64,000 nucleotides of DNA from Piromyces finnis finn (taxonomy: Eukaryota; Fungi; Neocallimastigomycota): contig MCFH01000042.1 of assembly GCA_002104945.1 (NCBI GenBank), positions 186,001 to 250,000 of the forward strand. Reading direction: 5' to 3'. Of the stretch, positions 243 to 51,221 are shown one piece after another. Within the stretch, counting starts at the first letter, position 1. Every line of letters begins with the position of its first letter. The translations under genes and the position numbers were made by a program. The notes under the pieces were generated by a model. The model saw nothing but the letters and a program-made list of their open reading frames with translations, was not told where the DNA came from and did no database searches.

Positions 243-279
243 AGATGTCCCTCCTTTAAACTTGACCTAATAGGTAAAG

Positions 280-5122: not shown

Positions 5123-5136
5123 TATTTCTAGCATTC

Positions 5137-5847
5137 TGTTAAGGAACCAACAAATAATGTTATTCTTGTCATAATTAATGATTATGACCTAATCCATTCA
5201 TTATTGTTCCTAAATGTATGAAAACTTTACAATATTCTTATTTGTAAATTAATGTATACACTTAAATTATATTTAAAATTATTAATAATTATTTTTTATT
5301 GAACTTAAATTTTATTTTATTAAACTTAAAAATTAATTTAGTAATAATAATATATTGAAAATTATAGTTTATTGAACTTTTAGTTTAATTTATCAAGTTA
5401 ATGAATTTTTATTAATTAAAATTATGAATAATATTTCTGTAAAATAGTAAAATTCTTTAGTTAAATATATTTAAAGTAAACTTTTAATGTATGTTAATCA
5501 ATTTAATAATATGTATAAATATTTATTATAATAGTAATGTAATTTTATTATTCATTTAAAAGTAATTTAAATACTAAAATTAATGTAAATAATTAAAGAC
5601 TAATTCTTTTAATTAACACTACTTAATTTTTTACAAAAAGTATAAAAAGGTGTATATTATAAGAATTAGAGAATATACAGATATTTTTATTTTTATTCTT
5701 ATTTTATTTTATAATTTTATATTAATATCTTAATAAAACAATTTTATTAATAAAACAATTTTTCTTATTTCATTTTAATATTATTTTTGAGTATTAATAA
5801 ATTTATTAATATTTTATAAATAAAAGTAAATTCCTCGAACCGTAACA
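5137..5847 (+). repeat. A1 5' LTR
   Basis: Direct repeat of 12346-13056; TG...CA termini. Confidence 0.96.
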
Positions 5848-5854
5848 TAAAAAT

Positions 5855-5873
5855 TGGTGGAGATATCGGGGAT
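5855..5873 (+). promoter_or_regulatory. Primer-binding site of A1, complementary to tRNA-Ala(UGC) 3' end
   Basis: TGGTGGAGATATCGGGGAT is the exact reverse complement of the last 16 nt of the tRNA gene at 51222-51293 plus CCA. Confidence 0.95.
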
Positions 5874-6323
5874 AATATTAATAAAAATTATTAATACATA
5901 GGATAAAGTAATATTAAAATATTACTAAAATATTATATAAATTTCTTAAAAATTTATTACCCTTCAAAGTTATAGGTAATATTTATATTACTGTTGAAGC
6001 TTTAAGGTATAATATTTTAGTAGAACTGAATTAGTACGCTTTAGAAGCAGTACTTTATTTAGGAATTAGTGGTTAGGTTTTTAGGTCTAGTTTATCTTTC
6101 ACAGTAGAATACTGGAAAGCGCTGAACCTTTCTATTTTGCTAGAGAAATAGAAGTGCCTCGCATAATTGCTACATGACACTGGTAATACGGTAAGCTGGG
6201 CAATTGTGAACTACTTAAGCATCCTAAATAAGTATTGGAAAATTGCTGGGAAATGCTGTTCTACTATACTTATTATTGTAATTCAAATTTTTAATAAATT
6301 AAATATTATTTTAGTATTTATAA

Positions 6324-6366
<43 letters not shown>

Positions 6367-7397
6367 TTTTTTCTAATTGAACGATTTTTAAAAATTATTT
6401 TTTTTAAAATATAAATAAATAATTCGAAAGTGACCCTTAGCGTGGCAAGTTAAACTGCTGTACGTAATACTTTGGTGTTCAATTATATCTGATAATTGGG
6501 GAAGATAATCAATTATTTTCTTTCCGCTAATTAAGTTAGTGATAATAAAGAAATTAATTACGTTACTTCCTTTTATTAAATTATATTTAATATTAACCAT
6601 CGGGTATATTTGTGGCTTATCATCAAAGAGCTACGAGGGATTTTCACTTAGAATTACACAACCTATAATACTTGATGGTTTAACATTATATAGGTTGGCC
6701 TATATTTTTATAAAAAGAAATAAGTTTTTAAATAATAATTAATTAAAAAAAAAAAAAAAAAAAATATAGATATATATATCTATTCTTTTTGTTGATTCTC
6801 TTCGAGTAATTTAATATTGCTAATTGAAATATTCTTTTCTTACTGCTTTAAGTTAAACAAGTTATATCAGCATAGACAAGCCTTATTAACTAATCAACAG
6901 AGGTATACTAGGGGTGGTAGAAAGATCCTGAAGCACGTGACGGAACTTAGATCGTGTGAATAGGGTGACGGCAACATTTACCATTGGACGAAAGACTCTT
7001 AGTTAATAGTCTATTATATATAATTTGGTCGGTAACTTGAATCAGTAATAACAATATTAAATTAAAATTCTTGCTAGTAAATTGAAAACAAATAATAATT
7101 AACTATAAGAAAAACAGAAAACAAAAGTAATAATTTCATCTTTTCTGACTGAACTAAGATAGTAAGGAGTGATACTAAAAATTTAAATAAATAATTGGTA
7201 GTACGTGCTGTGCTAGATTATTTGTATCTCATTCTGTCAAGTGGTCGATAAAGGAATTTCGAGCTTGGTTACAACTAATAAGTGGTCGATAAAGGAATTT
7301 CGAACTTATAATTTTTTTTAGACTATCAAAGGTATTTTTGAGTCTATACTGTGTCATCTTGTACTGCAATAAATTCGGTCAAGGAAAATACAAGAAA

Positions 7398-8225
7398 ATG
7401 AGCAATTCTACTACAAGGATAGATTTCAAGGAGTTGAAGAAGGAACTCAAGGATATAGAAAAACTTTCCAAAGATAATTTGGACATAAGATCCTGGGCTT
7501 CTGAAATAAGTTTATGGATTGAACTTCAAGATATCACTAGTGCCAAGAAAATTTACATGGCATGTGTGCTTACTTCTAAGGGTGAACCAAGAAAGGTAAT
7601 CCAAGAGTTGGAAGATAAAGACAGTGATAGTGAAGATGAATATGAAAGTGAAAATGAAGAAGAGAATCAGAAAAATGAATCTAATGAAGAAGATTATCCC
7701 TCACTTGGGAAAATTATCAATGCCCTTGAAACATTTTATGGGTTAAAAGAAGATCAAAGTATGTTATTACGGGAACTAAGAAGACTACGTATAAGAAGAA
7801 ATGAATCAGTTAAAGATTTCAATAGAAGATATAGATCTTTATATTTAAAGTTGGATAAGAAAAAGAAGAAGCAGATTAGTGTGTTAGATTATGCAGATTC
7901 TTTACAAAATAATAAAGAAGCATGGAGAAAAGTATCTTTAAAAGATGATATCACCCTAGAAAAGGCCTTTAAGATAGCTGAGAAGGTAGATAGGTTATCT
8001 ACTAGAATAGATAATGATGGTAATCTACCAACGACTACTGCAATAACCAAAAGTTATAATCATTTTCAACCATACAAGAGAAAAGTTTCTTTTACTGAAG
8101 CCAAAAAGCCTAATAAAGATGATGAAATGAATGACCTAGTCAAGAAAATGAAGAATTTAACTATTAAAGCTTGTTTCTTCTGTAGTGAACCTGGTCATTA
8201 TCAACAAAATTGCCCAAAACTTTAA
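7398..8225 (+). CDS. gag: A1 Gag (275 aa; ATG at 7398), ends at a premature TAA 17 codons before the homologous natural stop (8277-8279)
   Basis: CCHC knuckle CFFCSEPGHYQQNC. Aligns with E Gag, which continues ...NHLNH*. Confidence 0.88.
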   Translation: MSNSTTRIDFKELKKELKDIEKLSKDNLDIRSWASEISLWIELQDITSAKKIYMACVLTSKGEPRKVIQELEDKDSDSEDEYESENEEENQKNESNEEDYPSLGKIINALETFYGLKEDQSMLLRELRRLRIRRNESVKDFNRRYRSLYLKLDKKKKKQISVLDYADSLQNNKEAWRKVSLKDDITLEKAFKIAEKVDRLSTRIDNDGNLPTTTAITKSYNHFQPYKRKVSFTEAKKPNKDDEMNDLVKKMKNLTIKACFFCSEPGHYQQNCPKL

Positions 8226-8266
8226 GCCATTATTGAAGGAAACAAGAAGCGTTATTATGATAATCA

Positions 8267-8301
8267 TTTAAATCATTAAGTGGGAGAAGAAGCACTCCCA
8301 T
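8267..8301 (+). promoter_or_regulatory. Predicted -1 ribosomal frameshift signal (T TTA AAT + 6-nt spacer + hairpin)
   Basis: Heptamer in gag frame 8267-8273. Stem GTGGGAG/CTCCCAT 8280-8301. The -1 frame opens right after stops at 8258-8263 and runs into pol. Confidence 0.8.
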
Positions 8302-8335
8302 CGTCAATAAAATAGCTTCAGCTCAGTATCAGTCA

Positions 8336-11300
8336 ATGCCAAGTGAAGAAACAACAAGCCAGAGTGATTGGTCGAAAGAAGAATATGATGAAGAAATCGA
8401 AAGTGACTTTGAAGATACTGATATTAATGAACAGTTCTTTGTATGTGCTAATAAAAGGAAGTTGGATAAAATAAGCAAAGAACAAGATGATAATAAAGAA
8501 AAACGACTTCACAAAAACTTGAAAAATGATCCTAGACCTATTCTTACACCTGCTCTTAGGAAACGTAAAGCACAAGAATTAGAAAATATACCAATAGATG
8601 TTTCTCCTAAGCAACTGCATCCTTCTATTATTGCTCAACCGAATATCAGAGAACAAAAACTAAAAGAAAGAAAACTTCGGGATAAAGAGCGTGCTAGTAG
8701 TAGTGAACAAAAGGAAGAAGAAAAGAATGAATTGGCAAGTTCTAATGAAGATCCTATTATTATCGACTATGATGAAGAAGAAATGTTATCTGCAATTACA
8801 GATAAGAAAGGTGCTAAGGTGGTAGAGAAAGATAACACAAGTGAATCAACCAAATCTACTTCTAATTCAACTCTAAATAAATTAATGAAAGAGCAAAAGA
8901 AAGAAAAACTTGCAGAATCGAAGGTTAAGAAAACTGCTAGAAATATTCAAATGATAGCAGATACGGAAGAATATAATGTAGTTAAAGATCTTAACGAAAC
9001 AAAATGCAATATTACTTTTGGTCAATTACTTAACTCGGCTCCAAAGTTACGAACGCAAGTGTCACAAGGTCTTAAACTGGAAAAGAACAACACAAAAATT
9101 GTGGGAGCTCTGGAGAATTTTAATGCTACTTCGGTATTAGTAAATAATGTAGATCATTCGTATGTAAGCAAAAGTAAAGAAGTATCAGAAGAAGATATCG
9201 CTATGGTAGATGCAACGGTTGATGGGGTACCAGGTAAATTATTAGTTGATTCCTGTAGCAACTTAAGTATTATAACAAAAAAATATTTAGATAAACTTCC
9301 CCATCAATATGAATCTATTGGATTGAGTTGTGGAAGAATACGTTTAGCTACTAAAAATGATGACTATTCGGAAGGCATAATTATTAGAGTACCGGTCCAG
9401 ATAAATGATCTTACAATCACTGCTGATTTTAGAGTGGTGGATAAAGAAGACCCCTTTTATGATATGTTAATTAATTTGAAAACCCAAATGGATAACAACT
9501 TATTTATCCACCCACTTCGCTATAGTCTTTGCAGATTTAATTCAAATGGATTTATTGAAAATATTGCTCCAATTAATAACAAATATGATGATGAAGAAAA
9601 GATTATGTGTATGATACGTAGAGTCGGTGATGAAGATTTTAAAAGTGATTTGAAAAATATTGAAGGTTTACCACCTTCAGAATATATTCACAATAAAAAT
9701 TTTACTGAGACTCTTAATGAAAAGTATCGAGAACAAATTGTTCGGATATTGGAAGAGAATATTGAAATTATTGCTACTTCTTCTGAAGAACTAACACCTT
9801 CGAATTTAACTCCCCATAAGATTAATTTAAAGCCAGGAGCAAAGCCAATTAAACAAAGATCATATAGGTTAGCCAAGTTCAAATCTGATATACTTAAGGA
9901 AGAATTGTCTAAATTGATTAATAAAAAGCTAATTGAGCCATCGTACTCGGAATGGTCTTCTCCGGTGGTTTTGGTCCCGAAGCATAATGGGAAATGGAGA
10001 ATGTGCGTGGACTATCGAAGAGTTAATGATTTGTCTGAAAAGGATGCCTATTCAATTCCTTTTATAGATGAGATATTTGATAGTTTACATGGTGCAACTA
10101 TATTCACTACTATGGACTTATATTCCGGCTATCATCAAATCCTTATGGATGAAGAAAGCGTTGAATTGACAAGTTTTACAACTAAGTTTGGAAATTACCA
10201 ATTCAAGGTTATGCCTTTTGGTCTCACTGGAGCACCCGCTACATTTCAGAGGGAGATGAATCGGATTCTGTTTCCGTTAATTGGAAAGTGTGTTTATAAC
10301 TTCATTGATGATATTCTGATCTATTCAAAGAGTATTGAAGAACATATTGAACATATAAATCAAGTTTTAGCAATTTTCCGGGAAAACAAACTAAAAATCA
10401 ATATTGAAAAATGTCATTTTATGCAAACTGAAGTTGACGTGTTAGGCCATCGTTTAACTACAGAAGGTCTTAAACCATTAGATAACAAAATCCAAGCTAT
10501 AAAAAATTGGAAACCTCCTTCGAATATCCATGAATTAAGATCATTCCTAGGTTCAATTGGATATTATAGAGATTTTATTCCTAATTATGCTAAACTTACT
10601 GCTCCCTTGTGTAAGCTGCTTAGAAAAGGTGTTCCTTTCAAATGGTGTAATGAACAACAAGAGAGTTTTATTATATTGAAAGAAAAGTTAATTAATGCGC
10701 CTATTCTGAAATTCCCTGATTTTGAGAAAGAATTTATAATCCGAACAGATGCATCGTATGAAGGAATCGGAGGAGTATTATTACAAAAGGAAGGCACAGA
10801 TATTGAACATCCAATTCATTATATTAGCCGAAGTCTGACGAAAGCAGAAAAAAATTATGGAATTACTGACTTGGAAGGGACTGCCTTATTTTACTGCATT
10901 ACTAAATTAAAGCCTTATATAATGGGAAGTCCATTCAAGACTATCGTCTATACTGATCATAAACCATTAATTGGATTATTTAAAAATAAGGAGCCAAACA
11001 ATGCAAGACAAACAAGATGGTGTTTAACAGCTAGTATGCTAGGAGTTGATATTCGTTATGAACAAGGTAAAAAGAATGTTGTAGCAGATGCACTGTCTCG
11101 AATGAGAAATGACAAAGATAAGGAAGTGTTAGCTACTAAAATTAATAAAGGTATAGAAGAAACCATGCTATCTAAGGTAATTAAAGAATTTGTTGAAGAA
11201 AAGTTCACCAAAATAGATGGGGTGGATTACTTTATTGATGGAAGGAATTATCGAAAACTGATCACGGAAACCAATGAAAAGCTGAAATTGATTTTGGAAG

Positions 11301-12322
11301 CTCATAACATTGGACATGAAGGATATTATAAAACTTATCAACGTCTGAGAAAAAGCTATTATTGGAACGACATGGTTAATGATATTCGAAGAGTTGTAGC
11401 CAAATGTGAAAAATGCCAACTTAATCGCCCTCAACCATATCCAGAACCTACGGAAAATCTTCCAACTGAGGTTGAAGCTCCTTTCACTCATCTGGGTTTA
11501 GATATCATTGGTCCATTGGTAAAAACTCGTAACAATAACCAATATATTATAGTTGCAGTGGATCATTTCACAAAATGGGTCGAAGCAGAACCCACCGAAA
11601 ATATCACTTCAAAGGATGTCATAAAATTTTTAATCAATGTTTTCTCTCGGCATGGAGTACCACAAGTCATTACAACCGATAACGGTGTCCAATTTACCTC
11701 AGATATGACCAAAGTTTTCCTGGACTTATATGATGTCTATGTCAAGTTTGTCTCAACTTATCATCCTGAAAGTAATGGTTTGACTGAAAATAGAAACAAG
11801 GAAATTGGAAAGCTTCTAAGACTGCTTGGAAAAGAAAACAAGGATTGGGATGAAATTTTGCCTTCTGCTCTTTGGGCGCTCAGAACTACTAAAAATACTG
11901 TCACAAACCATTCTAGTTTTGAATTGGTTTATGGAAGAGAAGATCAGCAACCCTTTGATATTGCCGCCAGACCTACTAAGGGTATTAATCAGTCTTCGGA
12001 TGAAATCTTGCTTGAGAAGTTTATTAATCATTACAGGTGGACGTTGGAAGCTTGTGAAAATATTAAAAATGCGAATAAATACTGGGCTACTAGAAGGGAA
12101 GAAAAACAAAGTATGACTAAGGGCAAAAATATCCATATCGGTGATCTAGTATTAGTTAGAAATTTTAATCGAACGAAGTTAGAGCCTTATTTCGTTGGAC
12201 CACTCAAAGTTGTCAAGAAACAATTCAATACTGTTACTTTAGCTGATATATCCACTGGAATTCAGATGAACCGAAATGTTCATCTTAAGAATATTGTAAA
12301 GTTTAACTCTGCTTTTGCGTAA
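8336..12322 (+). CDS. pol: A1 Pol polyprotein (charged N-terminal extension, PR, RT, RNase H, IN), open frame from 8264
   Basis: LLVDSCSN, WRMCVDYRR, MDLYSGYHQI, FIDDILI, TDASYEGIGGVL, TDHKPL, HNIGHEG...CEKC, LDIIGPL, TDNGVQF, ESNGLTE. Confidence 0.96.
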   Translation: MPSEETTSQSDWSKEEYDEEIESDFEDTDINEQFFVCANKRKLDKISKEQDDNKEKRLHKNLKNDPRPILTPALRKRKAQELENIPIDVSPKQLHPSIIAQPNIREQKLKERKLRDKERASSSEQKEEEKNELASSNEDPIIIDYDEEEMLSAITDKKGAKVVEKDNTSESTKSTSNSTLNKLMKEQKKEKLAESKVKKTARNIQMIADTEEYNVVKDLNETKCNITFGQLLNSAPKLRTQVSQGLKLEKNNTKIVGALENFNATSVLVNNVDHSYVSKSKEVSEEDIAMVDATVDGVPGKLLVDSCSNLSIITKKYLDKLPHQYESIGLSCGRIRLATKNDDYSEGIIIRVPVQINDLTITADFRVVDKEDPFYDMLINLKTQMDNNLFIHPLRYSLCRFNSNGFIENIAPINNKYDDEEKIMCMIRRVGDEDFKSDLKNIEGLPPSEYIHNKNFTETLNEKYREQIVRILEENIEIIATSSEELTPSNLTPHKINLKPGAKPIKQRSYRLAKFKSDILKEELSKLINKKLIEPSYSEWSSPVVLVPKHNGKWRMCVDYRRVNDLSEKDAYSIPFIDEIFDSLHGATIFTTMDLYSGYHQILMDEESVELTSFTTKFGNYQFKVMPFGLTGAPATFQREMNRILFPLIGKCVYNFIDDILIYSKSIEEHIEHINQVLAIFRENKLKINIEKCHFMQTEVDVLGHRLTTEGLKPLDNKIQAIKNWKPPSNIHELRSFLGSIGYYRDFIPNYAKLTAPLCKLLRKGVPFKWCNEQQESFIILKEKLINAPILKFPDFEKEFIIRTDASYEGIGGVLLQKEGTDIEHPIHYISRSLTKAEKNYGITDLEGTALFYCITKLKPYIMGSPFKTIVYTDHKPLIGLFKNKEPNNARQTRWCLTASMLGVDIRYEQGKKNVVADALSRMRNDKDKEVLATKINKGIEETMLSKVIKEFVEEKFTKIDGVDYFIDGRNYRKLITETNEKLKLILEAHNIGHEGYYKTYQRLRKSYYWNDMVNDIRRVVAKCEKCQLNRPQPYPEPTENLPTEVEAPFTHLGLDIIGPLVKTRNNNQYIIVAVDHFTKWVEAEPTENITSKDVIKFLINVFSRHGVPQVITTDNGVQFTSDMTKVFLDLYDVYVKFVSTYHPESNGLTENRNKEIGKLLRLLGKENKDWDEILPSALWALRTTKNTVTNHSSFELVYGREDQQPFDIAARPTKGINQSSDEILLEKFINHYRWTLEACENIKNANKYWATRREEKQSMTKGKNIHIGDLVLVRNFNRTKLEPYFVGPLKVVKKQFNTVTLADISTGIQMNRNVHLKNIVKFNSAFA

Positions 12323-12345
12323 GCAAGAGTCTTCGTGGGGGCACT

Positions 12346-13056
12346 TGTTAAGGAACCAACAAATAATGTTATTCTTGTCATAATTAATGATTATGACCTA
12401 ATCCATTCATTATTGTTCCTAAATGTATGAAAACTTTACAATATTCTTATTTGTAAATTAATGTATACACTTAAATTATATTTAAAATTATTAATAATTA
12501 TTTTTTATTGAACTTAAATTTTATTTTATTAAACTTAAAAATTAATTTAGTAATAATAATATATTGAAAATTATAGTTTATTGAACTTTTAGTTTAATTT
12601 ATCAAGTTAATGAATTTTTATTAATTAAAATTATGAATAATATTTCTGTAAAATAGTAAAATTCTTTAGTTAAATATATTTAAAGTAAACTTTTAATGTA
12701 TGTTAATCAATTTAATAATATGTATAAATATTTATTATAATAGTAATGTAATTTTATTATTCATTTAAAAGTAATTTAAATACTAAAATTAATGTAAATA
12801 ATTAAAGACTAATTCTTTTAATTAACACTACTTAATTTTTTACAAAAAGTATAAAAAGGTGTATATTATAAGAATTAGAGAATATACAGATATTTTTATT
12901 TTTATTCTTATTTTATTTTATAATTTTATATTAATATCTTAATAAAACAATTTTATTAATAAAACAATTTTTCTTATTTCATTTTAATATTATTTTTGAG
13001 TATTAATAAATTTATTAATATTTTATAAATAAAAGTAAATTCCTCGAACCGTAACA
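12346..13056 (+). repeat. A1 3' LTR
   Basis: Direct repeat of 5137-5847. Confidence 0.96.
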
Positions 13057-13060
13057 ATTC

Positions 13061-13926
13061 TGTAATAATTCCATTATAAATTATTATATAATAGAATTAT
13101 TAACTACAATTTATTGATAAATTGAGAATAAAAAGAAAATAAATATTAATACTTATCTTTAAGTTCGAGTTTATTATAAGAGTAAAAATAATTTTACACT
13201 TTAATAAGTTAATATGTTTTATTATAACTAAGTTAAGTAAAATAAAATTAAAAACGCTTTTATTATTATAATTTGTTTCTTATAATAATAACTCTTGATT
13301 TCTTAGAAGGGAATCAAGAGTCTTTATTTATATTATTTAATAAATTTAAAGTTTAAATTAAAATTTTATCTAATCTTAACAAAATAATTTTTTGTTTAGG
13401 AAAAGATTAGAAGAAAAACCTAAACAAAGTTCGATCAACATTCTATACATATTGATCATCGTATATTTTAAGTAAAACCAATTATTTTAGAAATTGGAAA
13501 AAACCTTAAAATATCGATTCCTAAACAATGAATAATTATTTTAAAGTAATTAATTAAATAAATAATTAAATATATTTGATAAAAATATAAAGTTAAATAA
13601 AAGTAATTAATTAAATTAATTAATTAAATGAATAAATATAATTAATAAAAATATAAAGTTAAATAAAAGTAATTAATTAAATTAATTAGTTAAATGCATA
13701 AATATAATTAATAAAAATATTAAATAAAATATTAATGAATAATATAATTAAATGGTTAAATGTAATTTAAGATATTAAAATTAAGTGAAAATAAATAATT
13801 AAAATAAATTTAAATGAGAATAATTATTTAAATAGACTAATATTATTAACATTAATTAATGATTAATAATTAATGATTTTAACTAAGAAATATTAATTAT
13901 GTATCAAATAATTATTATTTCTTACA
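13061..13926 (-). mobile_element. Solo LTR 'X1' (866 bp), relative of the element C LTR
   Basis: TG...CA termini. TSD CATTC (5132-5136 / 13927-13931). Shares the terminal ATTTCTTACA and the hairpin series with the C LTRs. Confidence 0.82.
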
Positions 13927-13932
13927 CATTCA

Positions 13933-14873
13933 TGTAGTAATTTCTTATTATTGTTTACAGAAATTACTATCTACAATAATATTAACGAATAATATTGTAG
14001 TATTATTATGCGGAAATAAGAAGTATTGAACAAATTAGAATAGAAAATAGAAAGTAAAAATAAAACTTATCGAGTTTATTATAAAGATTTATAATAAACA
14101 ACCAAACACAAAGAGTCAAATGGGTCGTAAGTTTTTTTATTTAAATTACTGATTTATTAGAAGGATATTTTATTTAATTAAAAAGAAAAATGTATTTATG
14201 TTATTTATTATAACGTATTCCTTTATAATAATAACTCTTGAATTTCTAAGGAATTTCAAGAGTGTTTTATTTATAATTTTATTAAAAAATAAGGTTAAAT
14301 AAACGGGTTCTAATCTTAACAAATAAAATGTTTAGGAAAAGACTAGAAGAAAAACCTAAACATGATTTTCGATCAATATTCTAGTCATATTGATCTTCGT
14401 GTAATTTTAAGTAAAACCGAATGCTTCTTTAAAGCGAAATCGGGAAAACCTTAAAATTCCGATTCCTATTTTATCCGTGCTTAATACAATACATAAAATA
14501 TAATTAATACATAATTTAAAACAATAAGTGTAATGAATATAGTTAGTCAAAATTAAATGTATAAGATAAATAATAAGTAAGTAAATTATTTATATTAATT
14601 AAATGTACATAAAAATTAATAATTAAATAAATTTATAAAGTTAATTAAATATATAAGAATATAGCAAGTAAATAAATTTTATATTTTATATAAGTGTATA
14701 TAAAATTAATATTTTAAGTAAATCATAAGTATTAACTAAATGAATGAAATATTAAATAATTTAATAAATTATTAGTAATAGTTGAATGTATAGAAAATAA
14801 TAATTTAAATAAATTTGTATTAAATAATAAGAAATAATAATTATTCAATTATGAATAATTAATATTTCTTACA
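13933..14873 (-). mobile_element. Solo LTR 'X2' (941 bp), relative of the element C LTR
   Basis: TGTAGTAATT...ATTTCTTACA. TSD ATTCA (13928-13932 / 14874-14878). Confidence 0.85.
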
Positions 14874-14891
14874 ATTCATTGTGTAGTAATT

Positions 14892-15539
14892 TGATATAAG
14901 GCAAACTTAAATGATTATAAAAACAACAATAATTATTAATGAAGAAATAAAATTATATAAGTAAGTTCTAATTAACAATTTAATATTAAACTTAAAAACA
15001 AATTTATAATAAATAAATAAATAAGATAAAATTAAATGTAGAAATAAATTAATAAATATTAAAATAATAATTCAAAACAAAGTTAAATTTAGTTATAATT
15101 AATTAGTATTTAAGTAAAAAATAAATAAATAAACAAATAATTATTTTTAAAATTCCGATATTATTAACATGTAAATAAACTATAATGTAATTAATAATTA
15201 GATATTTATAATTAAATATTTGTTTATAACAAAACATAATTAAAGAAGATAAATTAAAGTTTATATTAATAGAAAAATATAAATAATCTTTTAATTCCTT
15301 TATTTAAACATTATTATTAGTATAGTTAATAATCATAAACACATTATTTTTTAATAAAATTTAACTAATAAAATAGTTATTAATAAAACATTTTATTTTT
15401 TTTATAGATTTTGTGTTTTAATAAAACAAATTATTTATTTTTTTTTTTTGTTACAAATTATTATCACTTTTAATAACTTCAAGTTATTAAATTAAGATAA
15501 TAATAAGTTATTATATAAGAAATATATAACATTGTAACA
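14892..15539. mobile_element. Solo LTR 'Z' (648 bp) inserted in the outer end of the C 3' LTR
   Basis: TGATATAAGG...TGTAACA. 4-bp TSD AATT (14888-14891 / 15540-15543). Removal restores TGTAGTAATTATATTG as in the intact 5' LTR. Confidence 0.85.
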
Positions 15540-16384
15540 AATTATATTGTAATGTATATAATAAATAGTACAATATAATTACTTATTGATAACTCAATAT
15601 TAGAATTTAATATTAAATTATATGTATATAGAAAGAAAAAAATAATGAAAAAATTAAATATAGAATTAAGATTAGAACTTAGCGAGTTTATTATAAGGAT
15701 TTATAATAAACAACAAAAACACAAATGGGAAGGAGGATAAGAGTGAGATGTATTAAAATTATGTTTTAATAATATGTTTTTTTATTAAAATAGAATTATT
15801 TGTTATTTATTATAATTAATTTTTCTTATAATAATAACTCTTGAATTTCTAAAGAATTTCAAGAGTGTCTTATTTATATTTTTATTAGAAATTAAGGTTA
15901 AATAAATGGGTTCTAATCTTAACAAATTAAATGTTTAGGAAAAGACTAGAAGAAAAACCTAAACAAGTTTTCGACCAATATTCTAATCATATTAGTCATC
16001 GTGTAAATTTTAAGTAAAACCAATTATAATAATCGGGAAAACCTTAAAATACCGATTTCCTAAAGTAAATCCGTGTTTAGATATAATATGTAAATTAATT
16101 AGTAATACACAATTAAATTACAGGATTCTTATATATAAATATTATTTAAAAATCAAATGTATAAAATATTATTTAACTAAATAAATTAAATAAGTAAATT
16201 AAGTGCATAAAATATTATTTAACTAAATAAATTAAATAAATAAATTAAGTGCATAAAATATTATTTAACTAAATAAATTAAATAAATAAATTAAGTGTAT
16301 AAAATATTATGTAACTAAATAAATAAATAAATTATTAAACTAATAAGAAATATTAATTATTTAGATTGAAATAATTATTATTTC

Positions 16385-20468: not shown

Positions 20469-21370
20469 ATTATTTTTTCCAATATTATTGAAATAATATA
20501 TTATATATAAAAAAAAAATAGTATTAGTGATGGAAATATATATAAATATATAATTATTTTATTTTATTTTATTTTTTTTTTTTTAATTGATTGGTTTAAT
20601 ATTTTATTTTATTCTATTTTTTTTTTTTTTATATATATATATCTTGTTTGATTGATTGGTTTTAAAAAAATTTTTTTTTTTTTTTTTTTGATTGGTGTAT
20701 TTTTTTTTTTTTTTTCAATGTTTGTTGGAGAAGAGTTATTATTGTAGTAATTATATTGTAATGTATATAATAAATAGTACAATATAATTACTTATTGATA
20801 ACTCAATATTAGAATTTAATATTAAATTATATGTATATAGAAAGAAAAAAATAATGAAAAAATTAAATATAGAATTAAGATTAGAACTTAGCGAGTTTAT
20901 TATAAGGATTTATAATAAACAACAAAAACACAAATGGGAAGGAGGATAAGAGTGAGATGTATTAAAATTATGTTTTAATAATATGTTTTTTTATTAAAAT
21001 AGAATTATTTGTTATTTATTATAATTAATTTTTCTTATAATAATAACTCTTGAATTTCTAAAGAATTTCAAGAGTGTCTTATTTATATTTTTATTAGAAA
21101 TTAAGGTTAAATAAATGGGTTCTAATCTTAACAAATTAAATGTTTAGGAAAAGACTAGAAGAAAAACCTAAACAAGTTTTCGACCAATATTCTAATCATA
21201 TTAGTCATCGTGTAAATTTTAAGTAAAACCAATTATAATAATCGGGAAAACCTTAAAATACCGATTTCCTAAAGTAAATCCGTGTTTAGATATAATATGT
21301 AAATTAATTAGTAATACACAATTAAATTACAGGATTCTTATATATAAATATTATTTAAAAATCAAATGTA

Positions 21371-21620
21371 TAAAATATTATTTAACTAAATAAATTAAAT
21401 AAATAAATTAAGTGCATAAAATATTATTTAACTAAATAAATTAAATAAGTAAATTAAGTGCATAAAATATTATTTAACTAAATAAATTAAATAAGTAAAT
21501 TAAGTGCATAAAATATTATTTAACTAAATAAATTAAATAAATAAATTAAGTGCATAAAATATTATTTAACTAAATAAATTAAATAAATAAATTAAGTGTA
21601 TAAAATATTATGTAACTAAA
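21371..21620. repeat. 46-bp tandem repeat in the C LTR (5 full units here; 3 in the 3' LTR at 16162-16299)
   Basis: Unit TAAAATATTATTTAACTAAATAAATTAAATAA(A/G)TAAATTAAGTGCA starts at 21371, 21417, 21463, 21509, 21555. The LTR length difference 948-856=92 equals 2 units. Confidence 0.9.
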
Positions 21621-22262
21621 TAAATAAATAAATTATTAAACTAATAAGAAATATTAATTATTTAGATTGAAATAATTATTATTTCTTACACATTGATACG
21701 TGATAAAATTATATAGTTAAAAATATTAAATTTATATAGTTATTTTTAAGGGTTAGCAATTATTTAAGAAAAATAATAATTTAATCTATTATTGAATAAC
21801 CAATAAAATATTATAAAAATTTTATATAAAAATAACAAAAATTCACTTTTATTAAGAAAGGAGAGTTCTTTGATAAATATAATTAATTATTGAGAATTTT
21901 TATATCTGTTTTAACTAAAAATATTTTTTATATTAAATATATAAATGTACTTAAAATTATTTTTATTAATAAAATAAAAGAGAAAGTTACAAATAAGATT
22001 TTTTTTATGTTTAATCCTTTTTTTTTCTTATATTCAAATACTTTGTGTATAAATTGTTAAAAATAATAAAAGTAAAAGCAAAATAATTAATAACACTAAA
22101 AAATAATTATTAGTTATAATATAAATAAATATACAAATAATCATTTTTTTTATTCTTTTATTAGAATATATTATTTTGTATAAATCCCTTTTGTTCGACT
22201 CCTGGAAATAAAATAAATAATTAAATTTATGGTATTATTAAATAATACGTACCATAAATTTT

Positions 22263-22279
22263 TGGTGGAGAATCCGGGC
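22263..22279 (+). promoter_or_regulatory. PBS of D, complementary to a second tRNA-Ala isoacceptor (not in the window)
   Basis: Implies tRNA 3' end GCCCGGATTCTCCA-CCA, with the Ala-type ...CTCCA acceptor end. Differs from the UGC gene at 51222. Confidence 0.75.
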
Positions 22280-22414
22280 GAGCAAAACAAAATAATATGA
22301 AAAACAATAAAAGATAATAATAATATTTAGAAGAACTTATATATATATATATATAAAAAAAAAAAAAAAAAAAAAGGAAATATAAATATATAAATAATAA
22401 ATAAATAAAAAAAA

Positions 22415-23665
22415 ATGATGGATGCATCAAAATTACAAAGGGCTATCCCACAGTTAAATGAATATGGAAAGGATGTGGATAGTTGGATGGAAGAATTTTC
22501 TCGGATAATGGAAATCTATGACATAACTGAGCCTAGAAGAATTTTTATATGGGCTAAGGAGGCTGTTGACTGTGATATTAAAGAAGTATTAAATTCTTTA
22601 GTAAAAAGGAGAAACAACGAAATGCATTACCCAAAATTCAAAGAAATCCAAGTAGCCATAGAAGAGTACTTAGAGATAACTCCTAATGAAAAATGTTCTA
22701 ACCTAAAACTTCTGAAAATTAGGGATAATGAAACAATAAAAAATTTCAACTATAGATATTTAAAATTATACCATCATTTAGATCATGATTATATGAGGTT
22801 GATATCTGTAGAAGATTATTTAAATGCTATTAAAACGAGAGTATATCCACACTCTCAGGTTATTATTTCAGAATGTGAAACATTAACAGAAGCTTTTAAA
22901 GTGGCTGAAAGAGCTGAAAAGGCCGAGAAGAAAACAATGAATAATAGTTATATTAACACTAATAATAATGCTAATACTGCTAACATAAACATGTTAACCC
23001 AAAACTATGGATATTCCTCTCTTTTGAATCATCCAATATATAGTACCCTTACTAATCATAGCTACCCAGATGATTATCCTAATATGAATTATGGAAGAAA
23101 TTATAAGAATATGGATATGTACGATCAACCTAGAAATTTTTACAATAATCATAATAATTATAATAATCACTTAGGGTATAGTAATTACAACACTTATGAA
23201 AATAGTCCTAACCTCAATAATAGTGGCAATCCTAGAAACAATAATCGATTCGGAAATATTAACAAAATAGGATATATTAAAAACGCTAATAATTTTAATC
23301 AAACCAAATTTAGTAATTTTCGCAATTTCAATAATAATAACTCTAATAATGGAAATATTGAATTTAATAAAGATGAAAATGGAAATATTAATGCAGATAA
23401 TCACCAAGGATATAATAATAATATTAATTATAATAGAAATAATACTATTAGTGGAGGGTATAATTCTAACCCTGGCTTACAAAACAATACTTATGGTAAT
23501 AAGCTTAGGGCCATTCAGTGCTATAGATGTAAACAGCATGGTCACAAAGCCAGTGTCTGTCCATATTCTATGGAACAGATTAGGATGTTTCAAAACGGTA
23601 CTAATAATAAAGAAGTAAATAATAAAGATGGAATTAACAATGTTAAGCATTTAAACTCCAATTAG
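22415..23665 (+). CDS. gag: Element D Gag (416 aa) with Asn-rich region and CCHC knuckle
   Basis: CYRCKQHGHKASVC; ends ...KHLNSN* at a TTTAAAC slippery site. Confidence 0.9.
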   Translation: MMDASKLQRAIPQLNEYGKDVDSWMEEFSRIMEIYDITEPRRIFIWAKEAVDCDIKEVLNSLVKRRNNEMHYPKFKEIQVAIEEYLEITPNEKCSNLKLLKIRDNETIKNFNYRYLKLYHHLDHDYMRLISVEDYLNAIKTRVYPHSQVIISECETLTEAFKVAERAEKAEKKTMNNSYINTNNNANTANINMLTQNYGYSSLLNHPIYSTLTNHSYPDDYPNMNYGRNYKNMDMYDQPRNFYNNHNNYNNHLGYSNYNTYENSPNLNNSGNPRNNNRFGNINKIGYIKNANNFNQTKFSNFRNFNNNNSNNGNIEFNKDENGNINADNHQGYNNNINYNRNNTISGGYNSNPGLQNNTYGNKLRAIQCYRCKQHGHKASVCPYSMEQIRMFQNGTNNKEVNNKDGINNVKHLNSN

Positions 23666-23685
23666 GGAGAAGGATAACTCCCAAT
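23650..23685 (+). promoter_or_regulatory. Predicted -1 frameshift signal T TTA AAC + hairpin
   Basis: Heptamer 23650-23656. Stem ATT(A)GGGAG/CTCCCAAT 23661-23685. The -1 frame is open from 23647 to 28356. Confidence 0.85.
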
Positions 23686-23934
23686 AATCAAACCGTCATT
23701 AATGGAAAATATAATGAAAATAAAGATAATAAAAATATAAATTTATTCAATTATTCAAATAATAAAAATCCACTTTATAATAATGATAATATACAGTATT
23801 CTAATAATCAATATGAAAATAATACTAATTATGCTCAAAAAGAGATTAATTTAAATAATAAGAATACTACTTCTTACGGAACTAGTTTTAATTATTCCAA
23901 CAATGAAAAGTATAAAGCTGAAAATAATAATGGG

Positions 23935-26900
23935 ATGAATACTGATTATTCTATGAATGTATCAAACCAGAATGGAATTAGTGATATGTACCCTGAAATT
24001 GTTGCTGTTGCTACTAGAAAGAATAAGAATAATGATAAGAAAACATTTACCCCATATAAAGTACCACCGGGTAAATTAAAAGATAATCCTGTACCAATAT
24101 CTACCGCGGCAATGAATCACAATAAAACTGATATAAATGATGACGACGAAGTAGTCCCACTTACAAGCGAGATAGATATGGAGATGAATGAACCAGTAAA
24201 TATTAATAACCCTAAAGTAAATAATACTGATAATCATGAAGATCAACTTAATAATGAAAAGGATAAGAGCAGTAGTGATGAGCAAGGTGAACCAACAAAG
24301 AAAAGTAATCCTACTGTCAAATCAGGAAAAAGAATACATGCTGATAAAATTAGTGAAAATAACTCTAACTATATTGATGATGAAATTGGAAATAAATTGA
24401 GGAAAGATAATATTACAACATTTGATAATAGTTATAAAACAAAACCAACCAATCCTAAGAGGAAAAATTCCTATAATGACACTACTGATGATGACGCTCA
24501 ATCTGATAAGAAAAGGAAAACAGAAAAATTGCAGTTTCTTGATTTGTCATTTATTAATCAACCTAATATAACAAATGCAAAGAAGAAAAATAAGTTAGAT
24601 AGAATAAACGAACTTTCAAATCTAGTTAGTGAAATTAATGAAGATAATAATAAAACAGATGAATCATTGACTAAAAATGAAAAGCATATTAAAATACTTG
24701 AAAAGTTGGAAAACATGTACATTGAAGATTTGATTCGGGATATTGTATCAACGGAAGTCAAAACTAAGTTAGTAAATTTGCTAGACTGGTTCCCTAAATT
24801 TAGAAGTGAATTTATAAAATCTTTAAAGTTAACTTCATTTAAAAACCCAGCATTAAATGTTATGTCACTTTTTAGTAGAAATAAAATTATTAAAGTACCT
24901 GGTGAAGTTGAAAATAATAATGCTGAAATTTTCTTGGATACCTGCTCTAGTGTTAATTTAATTACTAAATCAGCATTAAAGAAATTTCAAATCAACAAAC
25001 CTTGTATTGGTACAATTACTGAAACTTTTCTACAAGCCTTCTCTAATAATAATTCAAATTCTAGTATTTATGAATTAAGTATAAAAATCGGTGATCTTAC
25101 CTTTTCTGAATATTTTAGACTAGTAGACAAAGATGACATTTTTGATATACTAATTGGGGTTGATTCTTTAAAAAGAAATCGATTTGTTATTAACTTAGTG
25201 GATGATACTTTATATTTTATGGATTTAAGTAATAATCCAATTAAACTTACCAATTTGTGCTACGATATTAATATATACAATAATGGAAATGACAATAATC
25301 AAACTGAAGTTAATGATGATAAAGAACAGAATAATACTGATAATGTTAAGCACACTAATTTTGATGATTATTACCTTTCAACTTATGGGATATTACCAGC
25401 ATTAATTACAGTCACTAGTGAATCAACTACTAATAATCAAGGTTTAGATATAAAATTGAATAATTTAGAAATTAAAAGAAACATAATAAATAATATTATT
25501 ACTGTATTACCTTTGGATATTCAAAACAAGATGAAGGATGTCTTTAACAACTTTATGGAGGTAATAGCCATTAAAACAGATGATTTAGGTAAGACTAAAT
25601 TACTTCCTCATCATATTGACTTGCTACCAAATACTAAACCGATTAAACAGAGAGCCTATAGATTACCGAAAGTTAAAGCTGATGCTCTAAAGGTAGAACT
25701 TACTAAGCTCATAGAGAATGGTCTTATTGAACCATCCCATTCACCTTGGTCTTCACCTGTAGTTTTGGTTCCGAAAAAGAATAACCAAGTAAGAATGTGT
25801 GTAGATTACCGAATGTTGAATAATTTTACAATTAAAGACTCCTATGCTCTCCCCCTTATAGACGACATTCTGTATTATGTAGGTAATAATGCCGCAGTTT
25901 TAAGTACTATTGATTTGTTCTCAGGATACCATCAGATTCCAATGCATCCTGATGATAAAGATAAAACTTGTTTTACCACTATTTTTGGTAATTATAATTT
26001 TGTTGTTATGCCCTTCGGTTTGTGTAATGCACCTGCGACTTTCCAAAGGGAAATGAACAGAATATTTTTTGATTTAATTGGAAAGTCTGTGTTCGTTTAT
26101 ATTGATGATTTAGTTATTTTTTCTAATTCTCTAGAACAACATGTCACTGACTTAGCTTCTGTATTTCAAATTCTAAAAGATAATGGTTTGAAAATAAATA
26201 TTGATAAATGTAATTTCTTTAAGCAAGAAGTTGAATTATTAGGTCATCTACTTTCTGTTGATGGTTTAAAACCTTTGGACTCGAAAATAAATGTTATATT
26301 AAATTGGATTCCACCTAAAAACATTAAACAACTTCGTTCCTTTTTAGGTGCAGTTGGGTATTACCGTAAGTTTATTTCTAACTTTGCACAAGTAGCTCAA
26401 CCACTATACGAGCTCACTAAAAAAGGTATTCCTTACGAATGGTCCGATTCTTGTTCTAATTCTTTTGAAAATTTAAAATTAAAGTTAGCTTCGGCTCCAA
26501 TTCTTTCTCCGCCTGATTTTAGCAAACCCTTTATTATAAGAACGGATGCTTCTAGAAGTGGTATCGGTGGTGTTTTAATACAATTGGACAAAGATAAATT
26601 TGAGAAACCATTATACTACCAGAGTCGTACCCTATCTGATACTGAAAGACATTATAGTATTACTGAACTTGAGGGAACTGCCGCCTATTATTGTGTTATG
26701 AAATTTAAATCATTTATTACAGGTAATAATTTTGATACTTTATTAATTACAGATCACAAACCTTTAGTCAGCATTTTCAAAAATAAGGAACCAACAACAA
26801 GCCGCCACATAAAATGGATTACTGAATTTAGTGCATTAAGGGTGATTGTTCAATTTGAGGAGGGGAAGAAGAATGTTCTAGCAGACGCTTTATCTAGAAT

Positions 26901-28356
26901 GGAGAGTTCTCAAACCCCTGTAATTATTAATAATGATGAAAAAAAAAATAGTAAAATTAATATTTCTGAATTTAATAATGCTAATGATTATTCTAATGAA
27001 GTTGGAAATAAAAATAAAATAGTTACTACAAAAAGTAAAATAAAAAAGAAAGTTAGATTTGATGACGATATTATAAATGTTAGTAAAAATGTTGATATTA
27101 GTAAAGAAATAGCAAACGTGATAGTTGAAAATAAAGACGTAAATGGAGATATTCGTGTAGGTGATAGTAATGAACAAAGAGTAATGTTAAATAATTTTTT
27201 CAATGGCTTTATAAAAAAAAGAATTATTTTAATTGATGGAATAGAATATTATAAACATGGAGATAATTTTAGGAAAATAATTACTGATAATAATGAGAAA
27301 ATCCGATTAATAGCTCAAGCTCATGCAATAGGACATGAAGGTATTTATAAAACATATCATAGGTTATGTAGAGATTATTATTGGAAAGGAATGTCTAAAG
27401 ATATAAAATTATTCATCAAAGGTTGCCATAAATGTCAAACATGTAAAGTGCAACCATTAAATAAATATCCTGAAAATATTGCTACTCCACCAGAACTTCC
27501 TTTTACTCGTGTTAGTTTGGACTTAATAGGACCTTTAAATACCACTAAAAGAGGCTCAAGGTATATTATTGCTTTAGTGGACTATATGACTAAATGGGTA
27601 GAGGCTTCCCCATTAATAAAAACTGAATCTGAAGATGTGATAAGATTTTTAACGGAAGTGTTTTGTAGGCATGGTATTCCAGAAGTCTTGGTTACAGATA
27701 ATGGACCACAATTTAGTTCAGATAGAACTAAAGCATTCCTAGATCTTAATGATGTGTTTGTACAATATATTACAACTTACCATCCTGCTTCAAATGGACA
27801 AATTGAAAACAGAAATAAAGAAATTTCAAAATATTTAAGAGTGTTAGGAAAAAATAATGAAGAATGGGACGATATATTACCTAGCGCTTTATGGGCACTT
27901 CGAACTGCTAAAAATGAAGTAACAAAATTTAGTAGTTTTGAATTATTATATGGTCGCAGAGATATGCAACCATTTGAATTATCAATAAATTTAGATAAAA
28001 AAGGACCTGAAGAAACAGATGATGAATACTACCTTAGAAAATTTATTACTCACCATAACTGGATTCAGGAAGCAATAAACAATATTGAGACTGCAAATGA
28101 GGTTTGGAGGGATAGAAGAAAACAAATAAGGAGATTAAGAAGTGAATTTAAACCCGGAGACCTTGTTTTGATAAAACACTTCAATCGTCGAAAATTGGAC
28201 CCGTACTTTATTGGACCTTTAAAAATTATTAAACGACAATTCAACACTGTGACGGTATGTGACCCACAGACAGGGGAAATAGCCGAACGCAATATTCACC
28301 TTAAAAATATAATTCCGTATTATACCTCTTATGTAGGATATGTAAATGAAGAATGA
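23935..28356 (+). CDS. pol: Element D Pol (PR-RT-RNase H-IN; frame open from 23647)
   Basis: FLDTCSS, RMCVDYRMLN, IDLFSGYHQI, VYIDDLVI, TDASRSGIGGVL, TDHKPL, HAIGHEG...CHKC, LDLIGPL, TDNGPQF, ASNGQIE. Confidence 0.95.
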   Translation: MNTDYSMNVSNQNGISDMYPEIVAVATRKNKNNDKKTFTPYKVPPGKLKDNPVPISTAAMNHNKTDINDDDEVVPLTSEIDMEMNEPVNINNPKVNNTDNHEDQLNNEKDKSSSDEQGEPTKKSNPTVKSGKRIHADKISENNSNYIDDEIGNKLRKDNITTFDNSYKTKPTNPKRKNSYNDTTDDDAQSDKKRKTEKLQFLDLSFINQPNITNAKKKNKLDRINELSNLVSEINEDNNKTDESLTKNEKHIKILEKLENMYIEDLIRDIVSTEVKTKLVNLLDWFPKFRSEFIKSLKLTSFKNPALNVMSLFSRNKIIKVPGEVENNNAEIFLDTCSSVNLITKSALKKFQINKPCIGTITETFLQAFSNNNSNSSIYELSIKIGDLTFSEYFRLVDKDDIFDILIGVDSLKRNRFVINLVDDTLYFMDLSNNPIKLTNLCYDINIYNNGNDNNQTEVNDDKEQNNTDNVKHTNFDDYYLSTYGILPALITVTSESTTNNQGLDIKLNNLEIKRNIINNIITVLPLDIQNKMKDVFNNFMEVIAIKTDDLGKTKLLPHHIDLLPNTKPIKQRAYRLPKVKADALKVELTKLIENGLIEPSHSPWSSPVVLVPKKNNQVRMCVDYRMLNNFTIKDSYALPLIDDILYYVGNNAAVLSTIDLFSGYHQIPMHPDDKDKTCFTTIFGNYNFVVMPFGLCNAPATFQREMNRIFFDLIGKSVFVYIDDLVIFSNSLEQHVTDLASVFQILKDNGLKINIDKCNFFKQEVELLGHLLSVDGLKPLDSKINVILNWIPPKNIKQLRSFLGAVGYYRKFISNFAQVAQPLYELTKKGIPYEWSDSCSNSFENLKLKLASAPILSPPDFSKPFIIRTDASRSGIGGVLIQLDKDKFEKPLYYQSRTLSDTERHYSITELEGTAAYYCVMKFKSFITGNNFDTLLITDHKPLVSIFKNKEPTTSRHIKWITEFSALRVIVQFEEGKKNVLADALSRMESSQTPVIINNDEKKNSKINISEFNNANDYSNEVGNKNKIVTTKSKIKKKVRFDDDIINVSKNVDISKEIANVIVENKDVNGDIRVGDSNEQRVMLNNFFNGFIKKRIILIDGIEYYKHGDNFRKIITDNNEKIRLIAQAHAIGHEGIYKTYHRLCRDYYWKGMSKDIKLFIKGCHKCQTCKVQPLNKYPENIATPPELPFTRVSLDLIGPLNTTKRGSRYIIALVDYMTKWVEASPLIKTESEDVIRFLTEVFCRHGIPEVLVTDNGPQFSSDRTKAFLDLNDVFVQYITTYHPASNGQIENRNKEISKYLRVLGKNNEEWDDILPSALWALRTAKNEVTKFSSFELLYGRRDMQPFELSINLDKKGPEETDDEYYLRKFITHHNWIQEAINNIETANEVWRDRRKQIRRLRSEFKPGDLVLIKHFNRRKLDPYFIGPLKIIKRQFNTVTVCDPQTGEIAERNIHLKNIIPYYTSYVGYVNEE

Positions 28357-28469
28357 AAAGTGAAATTTTAAGGAAGGTAAAAAAAAAAAAAAAAAAAAAA
28401 AAAAATTAAATTTCAAAATCTAAATTTCAAAAAAAAAAAAAATAAATAAAATAAAATAAAATAAAATAA

Positions 28470-28520
<51 letters not shown>

Positions 28521-28851
28521 AATAAATAAATAAATAATAAATGATAATAAATAATACTAATAAATGATAGTAGTAATCATAATAAATAAACAATATTACA
28601 AATATATATAAAAATTTAATACTTACAAAAATAATTTAAAAGAATTTCAGTTGATGGAAAAATACATTTCAATTAATAGTAATTGTGAAATTTCAAAATT
28701 TCAAAATTTCAAAATTCAAATTGTAAATTTGATCAAATAATAATTAATAATTTTAATATAATAATTATAAATAATAATTATAATAATAATTTTTATTTAG
28801 TATATATATATAAAAAAAAAAAAAAAAAAAAATTTAAATTTCGAAATCTAA

Positions 28852-28888
<37 letters not shown>

Positions 28889-30570
28889 TAATAATGATAA
28901 TACTAAAATTTTCCTTTGTTTTATCGTATATCAATGCTTGCCATAAGACTTCAGGAGACGAAGTTTAATTTCGGCGGAGGCATCTTGATACGTGATAAAA
29001 TTATATAGTTAAAAATATTAAATTTATATAGTTATTTTTAAGGGTTAGCAATTATTTAAGAAAAATAATAATTTAATCTATTATTGAATAACCAATAAAA
29101 TATTATAAAAATTTTATATAAAAATAACAAAAATTCACTTTTATTAAGAAAGGAGAGTTCTTTGATAAATATAATTAATTATTGAGAATTTTTATATCTG
29201 TTTTAACTAAAAATATTTTTTATATTAAATATATAAATGTACTTAAAATTATTTTTATTAATAAAATAAAAGAGAAAGTTACAAATAAGATTTTTTTTAT
29301 GTTTAATCCTTTTTTTTTCTTATATTCAAATACTTTGTGTATAAATTGTTAAAAATAATAAAAGTAAAAGCAAAATAATTAATAACACTAAAAAATAATT
29401 ATTAGTTATAATATAAATAAATATACAAATAATCATTTTTTTATTCTTTTATTAGAATATATTATTTTGTATAAATCCCTTTTGTTCGACTCCTGGAAAT
29501 AAAATAAATAATTAAATTTATGGTATTATTAAATAATACGTACCATCATTACATAAAATAATTTTGTAAAATATTCTAAAGTTCAGGTTTGTATACAACA
29601 CTAAACTAACAATTAAACTAATTATTTTTAATAATAATTTTTATTTATTTATTTATTTATTTTTAAAACTATACTAACTAAACAACCGTTGATTACTTTA
29701 CCGTGAAGGATATTTTACCAGAGCCCTCACTAGGTAATCAATTTATATTTATTTAAAACTAAAATTATTAATCTAAACTATAAACTAATTATAAACTAAT
29801 GTTAATTTATCTAAACAAAATTAACCTATACGATTTTCCAACTATCGTTTCAATAGTTGAAAAATTTTCTTTATTTATACTTTTTAAATAAATTGAATAA
29901 ATTCTAATATACATGTTTTAATATTATAATTTTACATTGTTTACATTTATACATTTATTAAAAGAAATTATTTGTATTAAACTATTTAAATTCAATTTAT
30001 TTACTAAAGAATTTTCTAAACTTAAAATAAAGTTTTGATTTATTTACTATATGGTTGATTATATTTCAAACATATATTTAATTTATTTATTTCTAATTTT
30101 GAGGCTTAGTTTAAAAAAAAATTTTTTCTTATCTAAAATATTTATTGGTTAAAAATTATTTAATTTAAAATTTTATTTTATCATCAAAAACTTTATCTTA
30201 TCATAAAATTATATTTTACATAAATTTATGTTAATGTATTGTGATATAAATTTTTGTAATTAAAAAATAAAATTTACGGTACATTAATTTAATACATTAT
30301 ACATTATTTTAAATACGTATTAAATACATTATTCTATTAATACAATATTTTACAAATTTATTATTAAATTATTCCAAAAAATTTATTCAAAAATTTTATA
30401 ATAAGTTTTACTAAATATTAATTTATTATTTAATAATTAATAATTAATTATTAAATAATCTAAAGATATATATTATATCTTTACAACTACCCTCTTCGAC
30501 TTGTCTCTTGAATACATTTATTACACCATCATCACTAGTTAATTCGGGAGGAGAAGCATTTATTTTTTGA

Positions 30571-44671: not shown

Positions 44672-44701
<30 letters not shown>

Positions 44702-44707
<6 letters not shown>

Positions 44708-51157: not shown

Positions 51158-51221
51158 TAAAAATCAGGTTTAATAATAATTTTATATTTATTAATTTCAT
51201 TATTTATCATTTTTTTGAGCT

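Follow-up and report, generated by a model that had tools for sequence, protein, structure and literature searches.

Nested insertions at a single site

The analysed window, a stretch of 64,000 nucleotides (nt) of Piromyces finnis contig MCFH01000042.1 (positions 186,001 to 250,000, forward strand), is very AT-rich (15–35% G+C) and harbors six long terminal repeat (LTR) retrotransposon insertions, termed A1, X1, X2, C, Z and D, stacked at positions 5132–29549 (Table 1). To the left of the stack lies a tRNA-Gln-like relic borne by the LTR of a seventh element, the chromovirus T, which probably attracted the six others.

Self-comparison of the window recovered three LTR pairs within the stack, and all long open reading frames (ORFs) therein encode Ty3/gypsy gag or pol. 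A stepwise excision script returned exact boundaries and a matching target-site duplication (TSD) for six of six elements, each of which starts with TG and ends with CA. Removal of 24,411 bp in this way left one continuous sequence, ...TTTCTAGCATTCATTACATAAAAT..., and all TSDs overlap the same 8 nt; the TG in that of C (CATTG) is made up of the first 2 nt of the D LTR. The six mutually consistent TSDs argue against mis-assembly and, at the level of the sequence, the pile-up of six Ty3/gypsy insertions at one spot is confirmed as real.

The inserted elements fall into separate lineages. A and D share 52–55% identity in pol and both gave rise to 4-bp TSDs, whereas C, with a pol 32% identical to that of A, belongs to a lineage (C/X) with 5-bp TSDs. 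Both orientations are represented, with ORFs on the plus strand in A1 and D and on the minus strand in C. These results bear out a preliminary description of the locus, which had proposed six LTR insertions into one original target, from two lineages distinguishable by TSD length and in both orientations, and had given the same short sequence upon collapse; its element boundaries were essentially right, yet displaced by 1–3 nt in places.

Pfam domains RVT_1, RT_RNaseH, Integrase_H2C2 and rve occur in this order in A1, C, D and T, assigning all four to the Ty3/gypsy group (Metaviridae). Gag/Ty3_capsid and RVP were also found in C, and the Pfam search detected no chromodomain in the pol of A, C or D. 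A1 encodes a pol of 1328 aa with reverse transcriptase (RT), RNase H and integrase (IN) domains, as well as a Gag zinc knuckle. Among solved structures, the best match to A pol is Ty3 Gag-Pol (7q5b, E 2e-102), and further relatives are found in an Orpinomyces protein set and in gut and rumen-type metagenomes. The A1 primer-binding site (PBS), TGGTGGAGATATCGGGG, matches the 3′ end of tRNA-Ala; between the 5′ LTR/PBS and gag lies ~1.5 kb of extremely AT-rich sequence (5848–7337), which includes an A32T10 run and is devoid of ORFs of at least 150 aa. The minus-strand ORFs of C encode Gag-protease (PR) and RT-RNase H-IN-SH3, and its LTR contains a 46-bp tandem repeat (16040–16435, 21249–21782). 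D has ORFs of 416 aa and 1473 aa with PR, RT, RNase H and IN. The X1 LTR is ~69% identical to the C LTR in a global alignment, and for Z the genome contains ~11 LTR copies that are nearly identical, in part paired ~5.9 kb apart.

Table 1. Coordinates (window positions) of the stacked insertions, the recipient element T and its tRNA-like relic
Feature	Position	Strand	Details
T internal region	1–4702	-	pol in pieces; runs past window start
T 5′ LTR, main part (nt 7–439)	4703–5136	-	99.5% identical to T LTR nt 12–439
Relic T-run	5045–5048	-	TTTT after +73
tRNA-Gln(UUG)-like relic cassette	5050–5122	-	T LTR nt 21–93
Relic B box (putative)	5061–5071	-	AGTTCGAGACC at +52..62
Relic A box (putative)	5105–5115	-	TGTCTTAGTGG at +8..18
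A1	5137–13056	+	full-length Ty3/gypsy, 7,920 bp; LTRs 5137–5847, 12346–13056; TSD ATTC
X1	13061–13926	-	solo LTR, C/X lineage, 866 bp; TSD CATTC
X2	13933–14873	-	solo LTR, C/X lineage, 941 bp; TSD ATTCA
D	TG 14880–14881 + 21696–29545	+	full-length Ty3/gypsy, 7,852 bp without C; TSD TCAT
D LTRs	TG + 21696–22254; 28986–29545	+	pair compared
C	14882–21690	-	full-length Ty3/gypsy; 5′ LTR 20743–21690; TSD CATTG
C 3′ LTR	14882–14891 + 15544–16389	-	split by Z
Z	14892–15539		solo LTR of 648 bp within the C LTR, following its nt 10; TSD AATT
T 5′ LTR, first 8 nt	29546–29553	-	TGTAATGA; parted from rest by 24.4-kb stack

The recipient LTR of chromovirus T

The collapsed sequence given previously as the original target was correct, yet it does not represent unique DNA: the restored target corresponds to nt 1–11 of the T LTR (439 bp), and more precisely of the 5′ LTR of T. 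Read on the minus strand, it is TGTAATGAATGCTAGAAATAAC and equals the canonical T LTR start, TGTAAYGAATRCTAG..., and the entire stack sits within nt 5–11 of this LTR. An intact T copy (L003/L002) with a 439-bp LTR pair of 100% identity served as the reference. At L002, this copy encodes SH3_Tf2-1 and Chromo domains, the latter (PF00385, E 5.5e-16) following rve and SH3 (L002:166-1182), as befits a chromovirus. The T pol pieces in the window comprise RVT_1 (1909–3729), RNase H plus the IN zinc domain (1166–1990) and rve (539–1162).

Multi-copy matches identified the left flank of the stack as T LTR and ruled out unique host DNA. For the 87 nt adjoining the stack on this side, at least 40 genomic copies were scored at 99% identity, often paired ~6.08 kb apart, and twelve aligned copies revealed LTRs starting with TGTAA(T/C)GAATACTAGAAATAAC..., with a polypurine tract preceding the 3′ copies. 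A 197-bp stretch at the window start (1–197; in or beside the T 3′ part), which recurs with 100% identity at 31835–32031, probably belongs to another repeat family.

A tRNA-Gln-like relic in the T LTR

Among 13 tRNAs sampled, the cassette in the T LTR is nearest to tRNA-Gln, and its anticodon loop reads CTTTGAG (UUG; canonical tRNA numbering). The relic lacks the detectable cloverleaf of a tRNA gene, its stems having decayed (pairing of 0/7, 2/4, 4/5 and 1/5; acceptor 0/7, T 1/5). Its putative promoter elements, in turn, match the layout of a type 2 RNA polymerase III (Pol III) promoter, i.e. an A box at +8..+19, a B box at +52..+62 and an oligo-T stretch after the 3′ end. A1 ends 14 nt upstream of relic position +1; at the time of their respective insertions, the corresponding distances were 14 nt for X1, 15 nt for X2, 16 nt for D, 18 nt for C and 28 nt for Z.

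T cassettes as recurrent insertion sites

Segments within or next to the cassette have at least 106 (T LTR nt 12–46; up to 2 mismatches) and 99 (nt 36–70; up to 1 mismatch) copies in the genome, versus 67 for nt 1–35 (up to 1 mismatch). As these counts confine the loss to nt 1–11, about one third of T LTRs are devoid of their canonical first 11 nt, with the cassette body almost never broken. In 15 cassettes, a ...TTACA end lies 2–10 nt upstream of LTR nt 12, adjoining T nt 4–9 in 12 to 13 of them (two junctions are ambiguous). Other T cassettes are met by A-family or other LTR ends at nt 5–8. These junctions fall 12–17 nt upstream of relic +1, which is the range seen at real tRNA genes. A 99.8% identical copy of X2 resides in another stack fronting another T cassette (L007).

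As a control, A LTR copies matched from nt 1 in 39 of 40 scored cases and from nt 2 in the other, the first 25 nt were kept in all 30 fetched A LTR loci, and near-identical D LTR copies matched from nt 1–4. With A and D LTR ends intact, LTR ends as such are not the targets. Among paired T copies, the cassette was interrupted in the 5′ LTR in 12 cases and in the 3′ LTR in 4 (pairs with both interrupted included), a comparison biased by the fact that an insertion in the 3′ LTR lengthens the pair spacing. Insertions may still favor the T 5′ LTR, and the sequence upstream of the cassette (flank vs. GC-rich polypurine tract) could matter in this respect. Two T cassettes on the minus strand at G000:C192:124877 and 125588 are 711 bp apart, the length of one A LTR.

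Insertions upstream of tRNA genes

For the A family, 30 LTR loci were fetched, which provided 18 outer 5′ flanks; the C and Z families were surveyed via coordinates and junction patterns. Six of the 18 A flanks contain real tRNA genes (Trp, Ser, Ala, Ser, Trp and Gly) 13–16 nt from the LTR, always head-to-head, and the TSDs at tRNA genes (AAAT, GTGT, ATTT, TTTT, TTGT, GATT) are mutually unrelated. Three flanks are T cassettes, that of the present stack included; another, a diverged T-like LTR, has only the cassette in common with T and was hit 14 nt upstream of it. The remaining flanks are other GC-richer, possibly Pol III sequences (4/18) or adjoin other LTR ends (4/18). The GC-richer sequences next to A copies at L026, L031, L033 and L038 received no tRNA call from ARAGORN; the same sequence is present in two of these loci, and at L038 a tRNA-like start lies 14 nt from the A copy. 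It is possible that they represent unannotated Pol III genes or intron-containing tRNA genes.

Comparison of coordinates additionally placed an A LTR at C1:487107 beside a tRNA at C1:487124, the only adjacent pair in the lists. D copies were located 14 nt upstream of a tRNA-Ala and of a tRNA-Gln gene (n = 2), and an X1-like LTR 16–17 nt upstream of a real tRNA-Ala gene (L054). A junction pattern requiring a C/X LTR end 9–18 nt before tRNA-Ala yielded no match in one orientation and one in the other, and no adjacency was found between C or Z LTR coordinates and 63 scored tRNA hits (mostly Ala and Thr). The fixed distance that defines Pol III-gene-targeted retrotransposons was hence observed at six tRNA genes for A, two for D, one for C/X and none for Z. 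Altogether, at least two deeply diverged Ty3/gypsy lineages, A/D/(Z) and C/X, insert ~13–17 bp upstream of tRNA genes.

Another LTR starts immediately beyond the A copy in at least 14 of 19 outer 3′ flanks, so that stacks are the rule in this genome and the one studied here is a large example. LTR elements probably form a second stack at 32031–51162 of the window, on the 5′ side of an intact tRNA-Ala gene (51222–51293, plus strand). A second A copy (32715–41825, minus strand; TSD ATTT), with LTRs 1 substitution apart, is nested between two other LTR ends, and its 5′ LTR faces the tRNA-Ala gene, as is the case for all other A copies. Genome-wide, a tRNA model returned ~2,900 first-look candidates, at least 34 of which share the score of the tRNA-Ala(UGC) in the window, which could mean that the genome has very many tRNA genes or that repeats derived from tRNAs are included.

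Proposed Pol III-directed integration at the relic

We attribute the stack, with a probability of roughly 85%, to Pol III-directed integration at the tRNA-Gln-like relic carried by T. Unrelated TSDs at a constant distance suggest recognition mediated by a factor rather than by the DNA sequence, and the tether would most likely be the Pol III transcription complex. In the proposed scenario, TFIIIC would bind the B and A boxes of the relic and recruit TFIIIB, and integration complexes might dock on TFIIIC/TFIIIB, as in Ty3 and DGLT-A. Each new element would then land beside the cassette and displace earlier ones, the array growing at its cassette-proximal left edge.

The preliminary description had already favored a positional tether on the left over shared sequence specificity, and had postulated growth at the left edge. 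The former gains support from the tRNA-like cassette with A1 at 14 nt from its +1, from the insertion of A and D 13–16 nt upstream of tRNA genes that differ in sequence and TSDs, and from other copies of the cassette having been struck at the same position by several families. As to the latter, the sequence itself dictates that D preceded C, C preceded Z and X1 preceded A1, relations proposed earlier and upheld by excision, and leaves the orders of X1/X2 and X2/D free. If each newcomer lands beside the cassette, older elements are pushed away, making D, C, Z, X2, X1, A1 the most likely complete order, and this one order agrees with all three dictated relations. LTR divergence, which had been suggested as a means of ordering D, C and A1, proved uninformative: substitutions amount to 0/711 in the A1 pair, 0/560 in the D pair (plus one 1-nt indel) and 0/856 aligned positions in the C pair (plus a single 92-bp indel, which corresponds to two units of the 46-bp repeat), and with none in any of the three pairs the order of elements cannot be derived from them. 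Judged by these identities, the stack is very young.

Several observations weigh against this interpretation. ARAGORN and Rfam (RF00005) called no tRNA on the left flank, with weak chance snoRNA matches only, a result explained by the loss of the stems; likewise, the RNA fold of the left flank was not significant (z = −1.5) and the relic adopts no tRNA fold. The Z site is farther out than the other five, and a tRNA-adjacent Z copy was not found when Z LTR coordinates were held against the scored tRNA hits. For the C/X lineage, there is one direct case at real tRNA genes, and the genome was sampled in part. Finally, the stack junctions were read from the assembled sequence alone, in a repeat-rich region with identical LTR pairs, where repeats could have been misjoined. 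The probability of such an artefact is negligible, however, given that a single nested order of excision accounts for all six TSD pairs and leads back to a known LTR start, and that the same architecture recurs at other loci.

With all TSDs overlapping the same 8 nt, one might suppose that the integrases recognize a local motif, ATTCAT or similar. Yet the same families occur at tRNA genes with unrelated TSDs at a constant 13–16 nt, C inserted into D and Z into C rather than into T sequence, and the target sites sampled already point to no conserved motif, rendering shared sequence specificity most improbable. A general preference for LTR termini or repeat-rich chromatin would instead turn the locus into a nested 'transposable element graveyard' in which the cassette plays no role, and would be in keeping with the A 3′ flanks that adjoin LTR starts (at least 14/19) and the many D copies that adjoin LTR ends. 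Adjoining LTRs are, however, also the expected product of repeated insertion at one tRNA-proximal spot; moreover, scored A LTRs are intact from nt 1–2 and near-identical D LTRs match from nt 1–4, whereas the canonical nt 1–11 are missing from about a third of T LTRs, whose breaks fall only within the 11 nt preceding the cassette. We therefore deem this preference very unlikely. The tether could also be some feature peculiar to T and distinct from the Pol III machinery, such as a different DNA-binding factor or a structure of the DNA at the LTR start, considering that the relic is degenerate and the case for Pol III factor binding indirect. Here, the distance to relic +1 (12–18 nt), which matches that at real tRNA genes (13–17 nt), and the hit at 14 nt in a diverged T-like LTR sharing only the cassette make such a tether very unlikely.

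Going one step further than Pol III-directed integration at this locus, we lean slightly towards the relic being a functional binding site for Pol III factors in vivo at ~100 places in the genome, with the insertions as a natural footprint of its occupancy. If so, the breaks in about one third of T copies, exactly 12–18 nt upstream, would constitute that footprint, and autonomous T would disseminate pseudo-tRNA 'landing pads' and thereby redirect other retrotransposons to its own copies. The stack itself indicates that a decayed tRNA relic with only the promoter boxes left is enough to attract such elements, and that relics of this kind are spread by an autonomous chromovirus. This offers a natural gauge of Pol III complex occupancy and a means to define the minimal DNA signal that the integrases need. 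For annotation purposes, stacks and pseudo-tRNA cassettes account for much of the local repeat structure.

Comparison with known systems

Ascomycete yeasts and dictyostelids are established examples of hosts in which Ty3/gypsy elements target sites upstream of tRNA genes (PMC5911963); the yeast elements include Ty3 of Saccharomyces cerevisiae, with its relatives Tj1, Tyl3, Ylt1 and Tca8 in Ascomycota. Ty3 insertion takes place just upstream of the Pol III start, at a distance of a few bp, and hence ~15 bp ahead of the mature 5′ end of the tRNA (PMC5911963), and solo LTRs and repeated insertions build up upstream of tRNA genes, both of which resemble the situation described here. The present system departs from Ty3 in several respects: its host appears to be an anaerobic gut fungus of an early-diverging group, one and the same site is used by at least two deeply diverged lineages (32% pol identity), A and D were found in one fixed orientation in every case seen, and the target is a pseudo-tRNA inside the LTR of another element.

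Experimentally, targeting has been demonstrated for Ty3, involving IN and TFIIIB, and for Dictyostelium DGLT-A, involving RNase H/IN and TFIIIC (PMC5006619, PMC6101501). DGLT-A, too, is a chromodomain-less Ty3/gypsy element of an AT-rich genome and inserts 13–33 bp (mean 15) upstream of tRNA genes (PMC5006619, PMC6101501); its host is unrelated, however, and the RNase H-Tfc4 contact is, as far as the present data go, a DGLT-A feature. As for TRE5-A, a tRNA-targeting retroelement likewise from Dictyostelium, its integration sites have served to reveal putative Pol III complex binding sites outside tRNA genes, though for a non-LTR element on the rDNA palindrome (PMC5391098) rather than for LTR elements on a relic borne by a transposable element.

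With regard to the recipient, Helenus/TRIMp3 and Cassandra carry tRNA- or 5S-derived Pol III promoters in their LTRs, according to the abstract and fungal section of PMC10886601, and in this they are similar to T, whose LTR bears a tRNA-derived sequence with Pol III promoter boxes. These are small non-autonomous terminal-repeat retrotransposons in miniature, Helenus/TRIMp3 being short and non-coding, whereas T is a ~6.5-kb autonomous chromovirus that encodes pol and has LTR starts 6.08 kb apart. The same two sections make no mention of Pol III-promoter LTRs as integration targets, and our literature searches found no report of tRNA-upstream targeting by Ty3/gypsy elements in Neocallimastigomycota. 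The kind of targeting is already known; what is new is the target, an LTR-borne relic, and the host, which appears to be an anaerobic gut fungus.

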